Virus record (IMG/VR): IMGVR_UViG_3300027708_000012
Span: 281,370 to 345,369 of that record
DNA: 64,000 bases
Reading direction: 5' to 3' (one strand)
Shown: positions 19,648 through 39,235 of the stretch, piece after piece
How positions within the stretch are numbered: position 1 is the first letter of the stretch
How the letters are laid out: each line of letters begins with the position of its first letter
Notes under the pieces: generated by a model
The model's input: the letters and a program-made list of their open reading frames with translations, nothing else
Database searches by the model: none
Told to the model about the DNA's origin: nothing
Translations under genes and position numbers: made by a program

Positions 19648-21555
19648 TTACTTTTTGTCAGTAGGGTCAACCTCTGTGAAAGCCGCATTAACTGACTGGC
19701 CTTCTTCAGGTTGTACTGGTGCTGATTGCGCTGCACTTTCTGCAGCTTGCTTCTTGGCCATAACTGGACCTGCTGCCTCAAAAAATGTTTCAACTGATTT
19801 TTGAATAACATCTTTGTCGTCCCCTGCGCAAGCAGTTTCTACTGCTTTAACAGCATCGTCAAACTTAGTCTTTTCTTCTTCAGTCAATTGATCTTTGTAT
19901 GTATCATAGTCTTTCTTGATACTGTGTGTAGTACCTTCAGCATTGTTACGTGCTGTGATTAATTCTGCTTGTTTCTTATCTGCTTCGGCATTTTCCTCAG
20001 CTTCTTGAACCATGCGTTTGATCTCAGCTTCTGTCAATCCGCTATCTGACTTGATAGTGATTTTGTTTTCTTTGCCGGTCTTTTTATCCCTGGCACTTAC
20101 ATTTAAAATACCGTTTGCATCGATATCTAATGTAACTTCAATCTGTGGCATGCCACGTGGTGCAGGATCAATACCTTCCAAGTTAAACTCGCCAAGCGAT
20201 TTATTGTACTTGAATAAGTCACGTTCGCCCTGAGCAACCTTAATAGTTACTGCTGGCTGATTGTCATCTGCTGTACTAAATGTTTGGCTATGTTTGGTCG
20301 GGATAGTTGTGTTTTTAGCAATCAGCTTGGTAAACACACCGCCCATTGTTTCAATACCTAGTGTCAATGGAGTAACGTCCAACAACAATACGTCTGTCTT
20401 GTCGCCAGCTAGAACAGCGCCTTGTACTGCGGCACCAGCGGCAACTGCTTCGTCTGGGTTAACGTCTTTACGTGGAGCCTTACCAAACAGTTTCTCAACT
20501 GCTTCTTGTACTTTAGGCATACGTGTTTGACCACCAACTAGAATAACTTCGTCGATGTCTGCGGCGCTAACTTTAGCATCTGCCATAGCAACTTTACATG
20601 GCTCAATTGAACGCTGGATCAGTCCGTCTACCATTGCTTCAAACTTAGCACGGCTGATAGTTACATTCATGTGCTTAGGACCGTTTGCATCTGCTGTAAT
20701 GTAAGGCAAGTTAACACTTGTACTTGCGGCTGTAGATAATTCAATCTTGGCTTTTTCAGCAGACTCTTTCAAACGTTGTAATGCAAGAACGTCTTGCTTC
20801 AAATCAACTCCGTTGTCTTTCTTGAACTCGTCTACCAAATAGTCCATGATAGCTTGGTCAAAGTCTTCACCGCCTAGGAATGTATCGCCGTTTGTTGACA
20901 ATACTTCAATTTGCTTGTCGCCATCAATGTTAGCGATTTCAATGATTGAAATATCAAATGTACCACCACCCAAGTCATAGACTGCAATCTTGCGATCTTT
21001 CTTGTCTGCTTTGTCAACACCATAAGCCAATGCGGCCGCTGTCGGCTCGTTGATAATACGTAGAACTTCTAAGCCTGCAATACGTCCGGCATCTTTAGTA
21101 GCTTGACGCTGGCTATCGTTGAAGTAAGCTGGAACTGTAATAACAGCTTGGGTCACTGTTGTACCTAAATAGTCTTCAGCAGTTTTTTTCATTTTGCGAA
21201 GTACTTCAGCTGATACTTGCTGTGGTGCAAGTTTTTCGCCGTTTGCTTCGATCCAAGCATCACCGTTGTCTGCTTTAATAATGCTGTAGGGCATCAAGTC
21301 AATATCTTTTTGCACAGCAGCTTCGTCAAACTTGCGACCAATAAGGCGCTTGCTGGCGTAAATTGTATTTTTTGGGTTTGTGACTGCTTGTCGTTTTGCT
21401 GTTGCACCAACTAGGATTTCGTCCTTTGTATATGCAATGATTGATGGTGTTGTTCTTGCGCCTTCGCTATTTTCAATAACTTTTGCTACTCCATTTTCTA
21501 GGATAGCTACGCAACTGTTTGTTGTACCTAAATCGATACCGATGATTTTACTCAT
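19648..21555 (-). CDS. dnaK: Chaperone DnaK (Hsp70)
   Basis: [35 protein letters not shown]; full length 635 aa. Confidence 0.98.
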
Positions 21556-21559
21556 AATT

Positions 21560-21630
21560 TTCTCCTTTAATTAAGCGAGTAATGCGGGCACCATGCCCTT
21601 GTACTAAACCCTTACGGCGTTTCAGCACGT
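21560..21630 (-). promoter_or_regulatory. ROSE-like RNA thermometer in dnaK leader
   Basis: CUCGCU-UAAUUAA-AGGAG hairpin plus two upstream hairpins, downstream of TAAATA at about 21634-21639. Confidence 0.65.
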
Positions 21631-21645
21631 AATTATTTATGTCTG

Positions 21646-21927
21646 TCAAACAGTTTCTTTGAAAATATTTGACCAGATTTTTAGTTTTTCTCGCTTGGCT
21701 TCTGCCGCTTGTTCAATGTTGGTCCAGCTAACTACATCTAGTTCTTGCAGGATTTCAATCATAGCATACAAGTCGCCCAATTCTTCTTCCAAGTGTTCCC
21801 TATTAGTTTTGGGTTTACCTGGCTTAAGATTGTCTAGGCCAAAGCGACTAATCTTACTTACCGCTTGAATAACTTCTGCACATTCTTCTTGGAGAATGTC
21901 CATTACTTCTTTAGTTTGTGAATCCAT
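21646..21927 (-). CDS. MazG-like NTP pyrophosphohydrolase
   Basis: LQEECAEVIQA...LEEELGDL. Confidence 0.85.
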   Translation of the reverse strand: MDSQTKEVMDILQEECAEVIQAVSKISRFGLDNLKPGKPKTNREHLEEELGDLYAMIEILQELDVVSWTNIEQAAEAKREKLKIWSNIFKETV

Positions 21928-21929
21928 AA

Positions 21930-22514
21930 TTACCTCTGATTTGCAAACGGAGCAATATAAGTACCTCCGCTAGTTGTACTTGTTCTTAGTGTGTTATAGA
22001 CATTTTGAATGCCTACCGCCTGGTTCCACGCATCCTCTAAAGCATGGTGGGCCGTTACCGGTGGACGTTGTGGGTTGATTCCTAAATCAAACGCTGTACG
22101 CACATCACGCACTTCCCAAAATTTCCAAGGAATAGCTCTATTGATTTTACGGAATACATGTTCACAAATGATAATATCAAAACAACTGCCATTTGACCAT
22201 ACACGTTTAGCACCCCAGCAAAATTTATAAAGACGAGCAAATGCTTCTTCAATATCAATTCTATCTTCGGGGTCAAAGGCAGCTTCCTGTGCCTCTTTGC
22301 TTTGATTAGCCCACCAAGCGATTGTGTCATCGTTAGTGGTCAATCCAATCCTATCACAACTATCTAAATCTACTTTACAGTAAAAACTATCCATATCTGG
22401 TTCTTTTAATTCGGAACCAAACGGATCAAATTTTACTGCTCCTATTGTTAAAATTGAAGCATCTGGAGTAGTATTAAGTGTCTCCAAATCTATCATTATA
22501 TCTGTTTTAGCCAT
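21930..22514 (-). CDS. DEDDh 3'-5' exonuclease (DexA/RNase AS-like)
   Basis: MIDLETL, WSNGSCFD, RDVRT, HHALEDA. Confidence 0.88.
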   Translation of the reverse strand: MAKTDIMIDLETLNTTPDASILTIGAVKFDPFGSELKEPDMDSFYCKVDLDSCDRIGLTTNDDTIAWWANQSKEAQEAAFDPEDRIDIEEAFARLYKFCWGAKRVWSNGSCFDIIICEHVFRKINRAIPWKFWEVRDVRTAFDLGINPQRPPVTAHHALEDAWNQAVGIQNVYNTLRTSTTSGGTYIAPFANQR

Positions 22515-22541
22515 TAAGTTCTTTCTTTATTGTGAACTTAT

Positions 22542-22570
22542 ATTATAACAGATTTACTATATAATGTCAA
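22542..22570 (-). promoter_or_regulatory. Consensus sigma70 promoter
   Basis: TTGACA-17 nt-TATAAT. Confidence 0.8.
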
Positions 22571-22800
22571 TAGAGTTTTGGTGGAAGTTGTTGATCACGT
22601 AGTTTTTTATTCCAACGACTTTTGGCTGCACCCTTTTTACGTTTGCGTTCAGTCGTTGGTTTTTCGTAAAACTCTTTGGCACGTAAAGCATCTAGTGTAC
22701 CTGCTTCTTCAACCTTACGTTTAAATCTTCGAAGAGAAACGTTGATATTTTCCCCGTCTTTGACAGTAATACCAGTTCCCTTACTCTTCTTGTGAATCAT
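22567..22800 (-). CDS. rpsU: Ribosomal protein bS21
   Basis: [44 protein letters not shown]. Confidence 0.92.
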
Positions 22801-23203
22801 TATCGTTTTCCTCGTCTTCGTCTTGGTTCTCCAATTGTTCAACAATCAAATCAAGATTATAAATTCGATTTTTACTAATTAGACCGTATGGAGTTATTTC
22901 GTCGCTAGTTATGTAGCTTGCATTAGGTTGGGCAATAATAAAAGTAACAAATTTTTGTGTAATGCTGTCACAGTTATCCACATCTACTATTACACAATCT
23001 GCTTGTTGGCATATACTTAAAAGCCAACCAATATCATTATCATCAGTGTCATAGATAAAAACATTTAAATCATCGATGCTTTTACTTAAAATTGTTTGAA
23101 ATTGTTCTTTAACTGATGTACTAGGTTTAATTAGTAGATAACTCAAGTTCATATTAAACAGTTTATCAGGAGGCGTTATTAATGTTATTTTTCCTAAGTT
23201 CAT
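22781..23203 (-). CDS. Hypothetical phage protein
   Basis: [13 protein letters not shown]...; acidic tail; overlaps neighbours. Confidence 0.75.
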
Positions 23204-23513
23204 ATATCTTTTCTGCAAAATAGTCTAGTTCTTCCGTGGGGTAATCGTTAAATTTCGTAGTACCAGTTTTTATATCATTTATAAACTTAACTAACTCGGG
23301 TTCTGTTTTAGAATCAAATATTAAATTGTTAAATTTATTTTCACTATATTCTATATACAATCTGTCTATTGTTTTAAATGGATCTGTGCGACTAGTATTT
23401 TTTATACGTTGCCAAAAACTTTTTGGATCTTTTTGCTCTTCGTTCTGAACATATGTTATTCTTTGTTCTTCACTTGGATTTTCCCCGTTTGATCCTTGAT
23501 CATATATGTCTTT
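23166..23513 (-). other. -1 frame extension of 23456..24604 reached via slippery site (115 codons)
   Basis: Open -1 frame KDIYDQGS...YVQNEEQ...FWQRIK...LYIEYSENKF...NNAS* starting at A_AAA_AAG. Confidence 0.65.
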
Positions 23514-24604
23514 TTTTTTGATTCTTCTTCGACTTTTGTTTCTTCGCCGTTACTATTAATATATGTTTCACCAACAGCTAAACGTTCTTCAATTGTAGAC
23601 TCTTCTAGTTTAACTTCTTCAACTACGATTGGTGTTTGATCTAATTCACTAATTACAACTGTTGAATCTGCCGTTGTAGTATTATTTGGTACTTCAAATT
23701 CTGGACCAGTTTGTATCCACTCACCACCAGGTTCTCGGACACCTTCAAAGTCTGTTTTAGTTTCTTTAGATTCCTCTACTACAATTGGAGCATTGAAAGC
23801 TTCAGTTAATTCATCTGCTTGATCATCAATCCATGTTTTTTCTTTTTGTTCTCTAGCCCAACCAAATGTCATTTGTGCGGCCAATAGCATGATAACTGCC
23901 AGCGGATCAAAGACAACAACAATTAAAATGATGATCCAAGTTACAGCACGTTCGAGCATCGACTCGTCTGGTGCTCGATCGTAGATAAATGCCGCGATAT
24001 ACTTAATTGGGCCAACTTCGGCTTCGACCTTGCGTACTTCTGCACGTATTGGGGCCGCTTCGTCGTTAAGACTTGCAATAAGTTTCTGTTGGGCTTCAAT
24101 ATCTTTGGCAAGCGCAATGCGGTCTTTCTGTTGACTCTTACGTACAGCGTTGGCTTTGTCCGCACCTTTTTCATCTGTTGAGCGACCCATAATTTGGTCC
24201 ACCGCTTCATCCATCTGTTTAAGTTGCTTCCTGTCAGCTTCGATATTCTCTTTGGCTGTTTTGATTTTCTCATCATATATCGCTATCTTACTTCCAACAT
24301 CACCACTTACTAGTGTTTGATCATTGTGTGCTTTAGAGAGGAATCCGAAGATACCCATTGATGTAATTAACATTAACACAACTACAGCAATGGTCATGTA
24401 ATACTTCATGAAACGTGGAACACGTTCCCAATTTGCTTTTAACCAAGAGGCACAAACAAGTTTACCTACTTCCAGGGCAGAGCCCATGATAATAATCGGA
24501 ATAGCGGCAGCAGAAAAAATAGCGGTGAGACCTACTACGGAATAGTAAATCGCCACCGCTGAGATTGTTAATCCTGTAAGCAGAAGCAAATAAGCTAATA
24601 TCAT
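23456..24604 (-). CDS. Membrane protein with coiled coil (4 TM) and acidic tail
   Basis: LEVGKLV, TSMGIFGFLSKAH, VEAEVGPIKYIA, VFDPLAVIMLLAAQ. Confidence 0.85.
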   Translation of the reverse strand: MILAYLLLLTGLTISAVAIYYSVVGLTAIFSAAAIPIIIMGSALEVGKLVCASWLKANWERVPRFMKYYMTIAVVVLMLITSMGIFGFLSKAHNDQTLVSGDVGSKIAIYDEKIKTAKENIEADRKQLKQMDEAVDQIMGRSTDEKGADKANAVRKSQQKDRIALAKDIEAQQKLIASLNDEAAPIRAEVRKVEAEVGPIKYIAAFIYDRAPDESMLERAVTWIIILIVVVFDPLAVIMLLAAQMTFGWAREQKEKTWIDDQADELTEAFNAPIVVEESKETKTDFEGVREPGGEWIQTGPEFEVPNNTTTADSTVVISELDQTPIVVEEVKLEESTIEERLAVGETYINSNGEETKVEEESKKKTYMIKDQTGKIQVKNKE

Positions 24605-25296: not shown

Positions 25297-25638
25297 TTAT
25301 TTGAATACAATTAATGCTAACATTGCAGCTTGTACAAAGAACCCTAATCCGATGGTTACAATGTTTAACAAGTCCTTTTGTATAGTAGCTTTTAGAAAAA
25401 AGCAGAACAATCCAGCCCAGCTAAAAAGCACCATGTCCACAGGGGGCATTTTTTCAGTTAGCCCTGTTAGAACAGCTAGTTCTGTAGGGATTGTTGCCAA
25501 ATGCAACAAAATTACAGCAACCCAGCCCATTGTTTCTGCACTTACATGGGGGGCATGTGTTTTGACATTTTCTACCCACAAGTTCAAATCAAAAAAGTTT
25601 TGTACACCTGTTTTAATTTTTTCTACAATTGCGTTCAT
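25297..25638 (-). CDS. Small multi-TM membrane protein
   Basis: Three hydrophobic segments. Confidence 0.75.
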   Translation of the reverse strand: MNAIVEKIKTGVQNFFDLNLWVENVKTHAPHVSAETMGWVAVILLHLATIPTELAVLTGLTEKMPPVDMVLFSWAGLFCFFLKATIQKDLLNIVTIGLGFFVQAAMLALIVFK

Positions 25639-25647
25639 TTTTAATCC

Positions 25648-26178
25648 TTAATTATAAAATATATGTCGACCAATTTTTGCCACGGGTTTTTTATTCCAAC
25701 CTGGATTTATATAATCTCCGTGAAAGTAAAGTGCTTTCTTTAAATCGGGAAGTCTAAATCCTTCTAACAACACCTTTTTGGCTACTTCCATACTTTCTGT
25801 ATAAATTGGACCGTTCATAGGTTTTTTGGCGCTTGGGCCTTCGCAATACCAACTGAACTGGCAAAGTACTTTTTCATATACTATATTTTTTTGGTAAACT
25901 ACCTTGCAGATATCTCCGGGAAATTGTCCGCTTTCTGCACGGTTAATTGTTACTTGAGCCACTGCTACTTTACCTTCAAAAGGTTCGTACCCGGCTTCAT
26001 GATAGATATTACGAGCTAGACAATCTAATTGAGCTTGTCTCATTTGTGCTGTAATTGGACTCGCTGTTTCTCGAGCTTCTTCTAAATGCTGAAATTTCAG
26101 CAAAACTACGTGTTGGACTGTAAGTCCGATTGCTAGTATAACTAGTAAGTTTACTGCTAATTTGATAATCCGTATCAT
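25648..26178 (-). CDS. Cell wall hydrolase (SleB/Hydrolase_2)
   Basis: CLARNIYHEAGYE..GKVAVAQVTINR..FPGDICKVVYQ..CQFSW..IGRHIFY; AAGGAG RBS before ATG 26178. Confidence 0.92.
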   Translation of the reverse strand: MIRIIKLAVNLLVILAIGLTVQHVVLLKFQHLEEARETASPITAQMRQAQLDCLARNIYHEAGYEPFEGKVAVAQVTINRAESGQFPGDICKVVYQKNIVYEKVLCQFSWYCEGPSAKKPMNGPIYTESMEVAKKVLLEGFRLPDLKKALYFHGDYINPGWNKKPVAKIGRHIFYN

Positions 26179-26346
26179 TTTTTTCTCCTTTACGGTGGAT
26201 GAGGTATCGCTACTACCATCATTGATTATTGCTTGGCTGTGTTTGTTTCTCCTTTTAGTAGCCTTGCCCTCTAAATCTTTAGTGGACAATATATAGTTAT
26301 CCTCTGCTGACAACGGTAAACAACTATTATTATTGTCGACCATGCT

Positions 26347-37907: not shown

Positions 37908-38261
37908 TTATTTGAGTTTATCAGAAACAGCGTTCATTGCTGACTGATGAATTTTATTTGGTTTAGGTTTGCCTTGCTCGGGTTCGAGTTCTTCGCCTTT
38001 GGTGTTAATAACAACACCCTGGCCGTCAAAACGAGCAACTAGTTTTTTAATAACAGGATCACTTTCCCAACGTGCGGCAAATCTATCATAATCGATATCT
38101 GGTGCGCCGTAGTTTTGTCCTGCTTGATTAAGTGCGTCCCAAGTCATAGGAGCGTCGATATGAGAATCACTGTCTGCACCTTGGTTGTTGGCGCTAGATT
38201 GTAGAGCCCTTAATGTTAAAATTAAGGGGTCTACGCTTTCTCTAATAGATTGAATTACTTT
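37908..38261 (-). other. -1 frame extension of 38255..39235 reached via slippery site (117 codons); includes ORF 37908..38147
   Basis: Open frame KVIQSIRESVDPLILTLRAL...APMTWDALN...DKLK* beginning at A_AAA_AAG. Confidence 0.65.
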
Positions 38262-39235
38262 TTTTTTGAGTTGAGTAGCATGCCTAGTCGACGACTGTAG
38301 TCAACACTTTCACGCTTTTCGCGGCCTGATACGCCTTCAGGGCCTGCGCCCATGTCAGCTTCGGGAGGCACTTCTGGACCTGCACCCATTGGTGCACCGC
38401 CTGCTGGAGATGCGCCAGGTAATGCTGGACCTGCACCCATTGCAGGTGCTTCTCCGCCTGAAATTAATGCCAATGCGCCTGATAAACCACCGCGGCTTGT
38501 TTCTAATGCCGCATAGATTGCTTCAAGAGCTGGCTTTACTTGTTCGGTATATTGTTGAGCAACATCGCTGCCCATTGCTTCTCTTATAGAGTCTGTTAAT
38601 TCTAAAAGCTGTTCTGCTTTCATGGCCGCTACATCTTCTAGCCAACCAGTAACACGGTCAACCATATCTTTAGTTGCCATGATAACTTCAGCTTTGTCTT
38701 CTTCGCCTTCTGCTAGATATACAATATAATTTGCTGCGTTTTCTGATAAATCATAACGTAATGTTAATTCAGCTGATAATTCTTCTTCGTCGCTTTCGCC
38801 TAATTCTACTCGCTTGATTGCGCTGTTGATCCAACTTTCTGGAACGCTGTGTTCCATGGCCTTTTCTTTTATTTTTTCAGCCTTTAGCTTTTTACGCATT
38901 TCAGCTTTTTGCTCTGCCTTTTCGTCAACGCTTTCTTCCATGCATTCGCAAGGATCTTTGTGGCAATCGCTGCACTTGCCTTCTTCACGTTCCATGATTT
39001 CTGTATTGATACAGTCTAGCATTACGCGAGTCTTTTGATAGTCAGGGCTTTCATTGATGCTATCATAGCTTTCGCTAACTTCAAACTGGCTTAACTTTGT
39101 GCGAAGTTTGTTACGTGCATCTTCTAATTGCACATCGCTAAATTGTTCTAGATTAAGTTTGTAGCCAAATTGCTTTGCTAAACTTTCGTTTAGTTTTTTA
39201 GCTGTCACTGGCTTTGATAATTCTCTTAGTTGCAT
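38255..39235 (-). CDS. Acidic coiled-coil protein, probable prohead core/scaffold
   Basis: Helical, Glu-rich, several (L/I)xE sites; ends NSKKK*. Confidence 0.7.
   Translation of the reverse strand: MQLRELSKPVTAKKLNESLAKQFGYKLNLEQFSDVQLEDARNKLRTKLSQFEVSESYDSINESPDYQKTRVMLDCINTEIMEREEGKCSDCHKDPCECMEESVDEKAEQKAEMRKKLKAEKIKEKAMEHSVPESWINSAIKRVELGESDEEELSAELTLRYDLSENAANYIVYLAEGEEDKAEVIMATKDMVDRVTGWLEDVAAMKAEQLLELTDSIREAMGSDVAQQYTEQVKPALEAIYAALETSRGGLSGALALISGGEAPAMGAGPALPGASPAGGAPMGAGPEVPPEADMGAGPEGVSGREKRESVDYSRRLGMLLNSKKK

Follow-up and report, generated by a model that had tools for sequence, protein, structure and literature searches.

A run of nine A residues (A9) near the 3′ end of a phage membrane protein gene is very probably a conserved recoding signal that gives two proteins with the same membrane body and different tails. 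The gene lies in a 64,000-nucleotide stretch of DNA, hereafter the window, that corresponds to positions 281,370 to 345,369 of IMG/VR virus record IMGVR_UViG_3300027708_000012 (345,369 bp, fresh water). The codons at the run are TCA AAA AAA AAG, and comparison of this site among related phage contigs strongly supports programmed recoding into isoforms of 382 and 479 amino acids (aa). As for the route into the second frame, we see about an even chance that slippage of RNA polymerase on the A9 run is the main one. All positions below are those of the window unless a contig is named.

On the minus strand the site consists of T (23521), C, nine A residues (23519-23511) and G (23510), which is read as S-K-K-K in the codon context GAA GAA GAA TCA AAA AAA AAG ACA TAT ATG ATC AAG. 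Past the site, frame 0 continues for 17 sense codons, specifying TYMIKDQTGKIQVKNKE, and ends at a TAA codon (23458-23456). The −1 frame begins with GAC at 23510, has 114 open codons and ends at TGA (23168-23166). Its first ATG, GTG or TTG codon is a TTG at 23360, which would start an open reading frame (ORF) of 64 aa. The predicted products are a 382-aa protein from standard decoding and a recoded protein of 365+114 = 479 aa. A preliminary description of this DNA, made from the letters and a list of ORFs, had read S-K-K-K over TCA AAA AAA AAG at 23521-23510, and this reading was borne out when the sequence was re-read. Its pair of products, of 382 and about 479 aa, agrees with the frame arithmetic, and the comparative evidence given below supports the inference of two products. 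The frame-0 stop that it placed 18 codons downstream is present, with the stop codon itself included in that count. The −1 frame is open as it claimed, with stops just upstream and no credible start, for 114 codons instead of 115.

A protein search returned more than 8000 relatives in metagenomes, in which residues 1-250 are nearly invariant. The C-terminus ...KKKTYM[IT]K..G.IQ.K.R(E) was found in 117 of the 120 best relatives, and the approximately 100 residues preceding it are hypervariable. We also fetched 80 related loci from viral contigs with six search peptides. The pattern [TC]C[AT]-A(7-9)-G-A occurs at the same place in 71 of these 80 loci found with the protein. Of the other nine, six belong to a subfamily with another C-terminus, two are cut by the contig end and one (L070) has a rearranged run. 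The 12-mer, a tail of 16-18 aa and the −1 ORF are kept in about 100 distinct related phage contigs. Every site-bearing locus has a frame-0 tail of 16-18 codons and a +1 frame that stops after two or three codons, and upstream of the site its −1 frame is open for only 2-20 codons, or 2-25 across the relatives. Forty-three unique loci have a −1 ORF of 103-115 codons and seven have one of 38-43 codons, with an eighth short one (L044) cut by the contig end. The next gene follows directly after the extension in relatives with the short form (seen in L061 frame 2).

The SKKK motif singled out in the preliminary description is conserved in homologs down to its exact codons. The lysine codons are AAA AAA AAG in 53 of 53 unique loci, with a gene-wide usage of 0.67 for AAA and 0.33 for AAG, and the preceding serine codon is TCA in 48 of the 53 (usage 0.31). 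The third-position A that extends the run from eight to nine is kept through serine, proline and leucine codons (TCA, CCA and CTA).

In the subfamily with the other C-terminus (L046, L052, L053, L055, L058 and L075) the body is 83-91% identical and is joined to a different C-terminal domain without the cassette. This C-terminus, ...GDMWLRTD..LYKFNGN.WIEVDKNVSDSYVYDEAYIDHLI..., is located about 1.4 kb after the start of each match, and a ClpX homolog is the next gene. Runs of seven or eight A residues in these six loci were considered as recoding sites and rejected, as they sit in the ClpX homolog. A related FKFDG.QWIG insert precedes SKKK in P0036, P0039, P0041, P0056 and P0086. The cassette is absent from the homologs in the cultured large phages XacN1, RsoM2USA, SCTP-2, Xoo-sp13, CM1, RAS14, Mosig and immuto.

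Several properties of the sequences indicate that both frames are translated. The −1 peptides can be aligned from the residue that immediately follows the run, with the consensus D[LI][HY]DQG... YVQNxEQ....lWsri ... D.LY.EY...F...VD..tEPeLy.Fve.tk.Gp.F..Y..Ek, and residues Y20, Q22, N23, E25, Q26, W33, F60, F76, E104, L105 and R106 of the extension are invariant in an alignment of 44 sequences. In most cases a three-helix domain of roughly 70 aa comes after YVQNxEQ...W; short variants of the extension end after the motif. Beyond the overlap, the ratio of nonsynonymous to synonymous substitution rates (dN/dS) in the extension is about 0.34. When the tail was recoded with synonymous codons at the gene's own usage, 12.6% of trials kept the −1 frame open, which predicts 6.7 open loci among the 53, whereas every one of the 53 is open. 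No formal probability is attached to this comparison because the loci are related, on a tree that is deep. Codon choice in the tail points the same way. The isoleucine codon after TYM is ATC in 30 cases, ATA in four and ATT in none, despite an ATT usage of 0.47. An ATT before AAG would create TAA in the −1 frame, and both ATT and ACT are avoided where TAA would arise in that frame.

No start codon accounts for the extension. Between the upstream stop and the run, ATG, GTG and TTG are absent from the −1 frame in all 53 loci, and 48 of the 53 have no canonical start between the run and YVQN. The I/V/L column immediately before YVQN is an NTA codon, not a start, because the frame-0 stop TA[AG] forces it. 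A search of viral contigs with the extension alignment alone returned 80 loci; the extension follows directly after the A-run of this gene in all 80, and it is a separate gene in none of them. The −1 ORF is therefore conserved in homologs as a protein, as the preliminary description would have it, and not once as a separate gene. Natural in-frame fusions also exist (P0098 and P0121-P0123). In P0098 the run is A10, and the extension, which is in frame, is 41% identical to that of the window. In P0123 (L168:3001-4152, on a 375-kb contig) the three-helix domain is fused in frame directly to the variable region, with no KKK site, tail or YVQN motif, so that the domain is made there by ordinary decoding.

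Variability in the overlap peaks at the third position of frame-0 codons (0.42 versus 0.29 and 0.28). This frame-0 pattern is accompanied by a conserved tail peptide and a conserved −1 peptide, and the overlap therefore appears to be dual-coding, with both C-termini under selection. As judged from sequence comparison, such an overlap is the signature of programmed recoding, and we infer that the long form is made.

The length of the run was examined in DNA on two contigs, one from run X1, perhaps the sample of origin, and one from an independent 2022 study (X6). Both cross the A9 run with 0 gaps, and the X6 contig differs from the window by 11 substitutions. None of the contigs aligned there, including those of relatives, has an insertion or deletion at the run. 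The preliminary description had allowed that a true A10 might have been misassembled. A9, not A10, is found in two independent DNA assemblies, and the gap-free run together with the conserved frame-0 tail rules out this error. An unbiased DNA pattern scan of metagenome contigs recovered A9 94 times and A8 once; the gene body was in the tail frame in 90 of the A9 matches, and no A10 came from the membrane-protein family. A9 constitutes about 90% of unique loci, and on a tree of 73 loci it is both the ancestral state and the dominant one. The five A8 (TCT) variants, like those with A10 or A11, stand on this tree as single tips, independent of one another, so departures from nine A residues arise but do not spread.

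The window contains a second copy of the same 12-mer. Its A9 run is at 38259-38267, and the TAA stop codon of the gene directly follows the 12-mer. The −1 frame at this site is 116 codons long (37911-38258) and runs into an ORF annotated at 37908..38147. In 58 unique related loci a run of at least nine A residues and a conserved −1 ORF of 100-122 codons are always present, and the run is followed by G in 49 loci, by A in five and by C in four. The methionine at which an annotator would begin the downstream ORF is not conserved. On this sequence evidence the constant feature at the second site is a run of at least nine A residues, not the heptamer. The 326-aa protein encoded by this gene has a weak PHROG match to a virion structural protein. 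Given its base composition, the 64-kb window should have about seven homopolymer runs of at least 8 bases, but it has only two. These read T9 on the plus strand and are the two recoding sites, and other long runs are seemingly avoided.

A ribosomal −1 shift and insertion of one A by the polymerase would give the same protein (...SKKK-DIYDQG...). In the mechanism that we propose, standard decoding would produce the 382-aa form ending in the conserved 17-aa tail TYMIKDxxGxIQxKxRE, and a fraction of expression would enter the −1 frame at TCA AAA AAA AAG. RNA polymerase slipping on the nine A residues would lengthen some of the transcripts by one A, and the resulting A10 messenger RNA (mRNA), translated in the ordinary way, would yield the 479-aa form. 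In this form a linker, the YVQNxEQ...W motif and a small domain of three helices take the place of the tail. Ribosomal −1 slippage on the in-phase A_AAA_AAG is a possible contributor, and the two routes may both operate. The site has the coding-strand A/T run of about nine or more that characterizes transcriptional slippage as known from Thermus dnaX, Shigella spa13 and mxiE and some insertion sequences, and its run is kept longer than the amino acids or the heptamer require. Nine A/T residues is the known threshold length for slippage by bacterial RNA polymerase (PMC5009743; PMC6260861), and the E. coli polymerase needs at least seven T residues, or a larger number of A residues, to slip (PMC6260861). 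Of the elements of a −1 frameshift cassette of the dnaX or IS3 type, the in-phase X_XXY_YYZ heptamer and the start-less conserved −1 ORF are present and a stimulator is not. Consensus folding of 48 loci with RNAalifold gave 0 pairs. Fold stability was not in excess, with a mean shuffle z of about 0 in windows −52..−12, +4..+44 and +4..+64, and the purine-rich codons upstream (GAA/GAC/GGC) do not form a consistent Shine-Dalgarno-like element.

In seven loci the body is in frame with the extension and yet an intact family-like tail ORF is found (A10 loci L084, L138, L140/143 and L150; L070; L166/L167). Loss of one A would give access to this ORF, whereas a −1 shift of the ribosome would not. In L166 (2500-2620) and L167 (2520-2640), contigs of one sample, the body is in the extension frame at an A9 run, CCT AAA AAA AAA GAC, with an intact tail ORF, TYMIKSQGKQIVKEK, in the +1 frame. 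About 30 codons upstream, the two contigs have a second, decayed copy of the cassette, with EKDLYDQG in one frame and KKISMIKEI-stop in another. In L070 (4220-4360, a single assembly) the run is C-A10-T, the body is in frame with a short extension, YVQNSEQ...W, and a family-like tail, MTYIVKQADQQVKKSRQ, is open in another frame.

The extension frame could instead be reached by a programmed −1 ribosomal frameshift on unaltered A9 mRNA, in which tRNA-Lys in the P and A sites slips back one base on A_AAA_AAG or the ribosome slides on poly(A); sliding of this kind is reportedly seen on iterated AAA codons. We regard this route as possible, if doubtful, as the explanation. The heptamer is in the correct phase, and AAG, though AAA is the commoner codon, is invariant in the 53 unique loci and retained by almost all of the roughly 100. 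The stop codon of the second site abuts the heptamer, and stop codons adjoining shift sites are known stimulators. In E. coli, A_AAA_AAG ranks with the heptamers most prone to shifting (PMC5009743; PMC4066793). However, heptamers without a stimulator exceed the 0.055% background in that organism by at most 10-fold, i.e. efficiencies remain below about 0.6% (PMC4066793). Slippage by the polymerase is favored over a ribosomal shift because neither a conserved hairpin or pseudoknot downstream nor a consistent Shine-Dalgarno-like element upstream was found, because the ninth A, which is beyond the heptamer, is conserved, and because the second site keeps its run while the last base of the heptamer has become A or C in several lineages. 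The tail ORFs that a −1 shift could not reach also argue against the ribosomal route. Thus, the outcome named in the preliminary description, a programmed −1 frameshift, holds, whereas the mechanism that this name implies may be wrong, as the evidence leans to transcriptional slippage on A9. Several points weigh in the opposite direction. The heptamer has the right phase, and almost every locus of the first site retains its G, the exceptions being L128, in which AAG became AAA to give A11, and the rearranged L070; a need for the Asp/Glu codon of the −1 frame or avoidance of A11 are other causes that could preserve this G. All five independent A8 variants (TCT AAA AAA AAG) retain the heptamer, which fits a ribosomal shift too. 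The A10 loci are possibly assembly errors or recent mutations, so that their intact tails are weak evidence. Exact contigs from two lake metatranscriptome runs flank the run on either side (X12, 23548-23712; X15, 23148-23298), but these RNA contigs end short of it and are possibly library DNA. KKKTYMIK was among the six search peptides, which biased the set of 80 loci somewhat towards those with the motif; the protein search and the DNA scan do not share this bias in the same way. The window holds no tRNA-Lys gene, its only gene of this kind being that of a transfer-messenger RNA (tmRNA).

Two further explanations dispense with recoding at expression. In one, the run would mutate between A9 and A10 at replication, giving mixed genomes that each specify one isoform. 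The A10 assemblies that stand as isolated tips (L084/P0098, L138, L140/143 and L150) and the A8 deletion forms P0025 and P0034, which end in KKRPI, are what such phase variation might leave behind, but a true switch would commonly show both states, whereas A9 predominates among unique loci and in the unbiased scan, A10 never spreads on the tree, and the contigs of two deep samples contain no insertion or deletion at the run. Frequent run-length polymorphism among close relatives was not found, and we consider phase variation very unlikely. In the other, the downstream ORF would be an independent gene with an odd start or a decaying remnant, and the A-run would be kept only for its lysines. The TTG at 23360 could start the 64-aa ORF, and KKK is conserved at the protein level. 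However, conservation of the −1 peptide begins at the run, YVQNxEQ...W is upstream of any start codon and follows an NTA column, and the short-extension variants keep only this upstream motif. A pseudogene would neither keep both frames in about 100 diverged loci nor show such regular avoidance of stops, with 53 of 53 loci open against 6.7 expected, and a requirement for KKK leaves the invariant synonymous sites and the third base of TCA, CCA and CTA unexplained. An independent downstream gene was ruled out by the missing start codons and by the fact that the extension was never found alone, and the absence of any recoding is in our view extremely improbable. Polymerase slippage on A9, perhaps with a ribosomal contribution, is the reading that we carry forward.

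Table 1. Coordinates of the first recoding site, its gene, the products and the second site (window positions; residue numbers for the protein layout).
Feature	Position	Strand	Remarks
Frame-0 gene	23456..24604	minus	From the ORF list; encodes 382 aa
Layout of the 382-aa protein (predicted)			Three N-terminal transmembrane helices; coiled-coil hairpin ~64-208; fourth transmembrane helix ~214-255; disordered acidic variable region 270-337; KKK; 17-aa tail
Putative recoding site TCA AAA AAA AAG	23510..23521	minus	A9 run 23511-23519; in-phase dnaX-type heptamer A_AAA_AAG
Three consecutive −1-frame stops	23550..23558	minus	13 codons upstream of the site; shut that frame
Apparent dual-coding overlap	23456..23509	minus	Frame 0, tail TYMIKDQTGKIQVKNKE and stop; −1 frame, linker DIYDQGSNGENPSEEQRI
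−1 extension, 114 aa	23169..23510 (stop 23166-23168)	minus	Linker, YVQNEEQ, W33, three-helix domain
Parts of the extension	YVQNEEQ 23433-23453; W33 23412-23414; three-helix domain ~23178-23393	minus	
Next gene	22781..23218	minus	Likely start ATG 23203; overlaps last ~38 nucleotides of the extension ORF
Putative second recoding site, same 12-mer	38255..38270	minus	TCA AAA AAA AAG TAA ends gene 38255..39235 (326 aa)

Structure prediction of the 382-aa protein with AlphaFold2 gave helices at residues 2-58, 64-141 continuing into 145-208 as an antiparallel coiled-coil hairpin, and 214-255, with a predicted local distance difference test score (pLDDT) of 70-91 in the helices, disorder at 270-337 and a low-confidence beta hairpin in the tail. 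The first 30 residues of the extension were predicted to be disordered, followed by a three-helix bundle at residues 40-111 (pLDDT 71-89). Positive charges follow the second and fourth hydrophobic helices. According to the positive-inside rule, this charge placement would put the coiled-coil hairpin of the predicted inner-membrane protein on the periplasmic side and its C-terminal region on the cytoplasmic side. The extension has no match in Pfam, PHROGs or the ESM Atlas, or with Foldseek against PDB and AFDB. The main protein has no Pfam or PHROGs match above threshold, and its fold matches are to generic coiled coils only. Tetraspanin (PF00335) was rejected at 22.5 bits against a gathering cut-off of 32.1, the likeness being confined to a four-transmembrane layout with one large loop.

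Homologs of the N-terminal 250 residues are present in the large phages XacN1, RsoM2USA, SCTP-2, Xoo-sp13, CM1, RAS14, uncultured megaphages, Pelagibacter phage Mosig and Flavobacterium phage immuto, all of them annotated as hypothetical. From these homologs in large phages it follows that the source is a large tailed phage. Neighboring genes in the window encode DnaK, a MazG-like protein, a 3′-5′ exonuclease, ribosomal protein S21, a SleB-type endolysin and small membrane proteins. Those at 19648-22845 on the minus strand specify a full-length DnaK/Hsp70 (635 aa), the MazG-like protein, an Rv2179c-like 3′-5′ exonuclease and S21, and the same order is seen in L084, L166 and L168. At 25297-26343 on the minus strand, two genes upstream of the recoded gene, are the SleB-type endolysin, which has an N-terminal hydrophobic segment, and then a 113-aa membrane protein that could be a holin. 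The tmRNA gene, found with ARAGORN at 1663-2106 on the minus strand, encodes the tag peptide AKTSTFEYFQVPVTLASANDAEFALAA and is unusual phage cargo. Linkage of the recoded gene or its homologs to a peptidoglycan hydrolase gene was found in five contexts. The linked gene encodes a SleB-type enzyme in two of them, the window and L084; L168 has a DPBB-domain protein, Mosig a glucosaminidase, and immuto a chitinase together with a holin. In XacN1 the homolog is instead among replication genes. We treat an envelope or lysis role suggested by this linkage as a lead, not a finding.

Recoding on A-runs is well known, but conserved phage examples beyond the tail chaperone are few, and we did not find an earlier description of this site in the literature. 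The notable aspects of the present case are the depth of its conservation, the dual-coding overlap and a second site with an identical cassette. Gene callers report a single protein of 380-470 aa and miss the extension; as the family comprises more than 8000 metagenome protein clusters, thousands of database entries would be incomplete. The natural variants (A8, A10, A11 and an altered base after the run) constitute a ready-made series for separating polymerase from ribosomal slippage, and two isoforms of a nearly invariant membrane protein encoded beside an endolysin offer a handle on an uncharacterized conserved function of large phages. A broader scenario, which we think unlikely to hold as a whole, is that large freshwater phages use the 12-nucleotide A9 cassette as a general slippage device in at least two unrelated genes, with nine residues tuned to the slippage threshold of the polymerase, and that in the membrane protein gene a fixed ratio of tail to extension isoforms controls an event at the envelope, for instance when lysis occurs, as a C-terminal, recoding-based analogue of holin and antiholin.

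By its sequence this case has the features of both recoding classes without the stimulators of the ribosomal class, and it shares properties with several known systems. As with lambda S105/S107, a single gene near an endolysin gene would give a phage membrane protein in two isoforms; in lambda the N-termini differ through dual starts, whereas here the C-termini would differ through recoding, and no sequence or fold similarity was found between the proteins. Lambda G/GT is likewise a conserved phage recoding that gives a short and a C-terminally extended protein in a fixed ratio. However, its place is between the genes for tail tube and tape measure, and its slippage is ribosomal, of the G_GGA_AAG type, whereas the present site is an A9 run in a gene for a membrane coiled-coil protein near peptidoglycan hydrolase genes, outside a chaperone/tape-measure setting. 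In Shigella spa13, type III secretion genes and insertion sequence (IS) transposases, slippage on A/T runs joins overlapping ORFs, and part of the product carries a C-terminal extension of about 110 aa (PMC5009743). The spa13 and IS proteins are unrelated to the one described here and their slippage was shown experimentally, whereas our case is built on comparison of about 100 metagenomic phage contigs. E. coli dnaX has the identical heptamer in the identical phase and two products that differ at the C-terminus. It requires an upstream Shine-Dalgarno-like element and a downstream hairpin, neither of which is conserved here, where the run instead goes three A residues beyond the heptamer and this extension of the run is conserved. 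Thermus thermophilus dnaX has a coding A9, products that share an N-terminal body and differ at their C-termini, and no need for an RNA stimulator, and slippage opens more than one alternative frame (PMC5009743). It belongs to another gene family, and in the phage membrane protein gene the mechanism is proposed from comparison. In Thermus the DNA frame of dnaX encodes the long product and slippage truncates it, whereas here the DNA frame encodes the short product and the shifted frame would add a 114-aa module.

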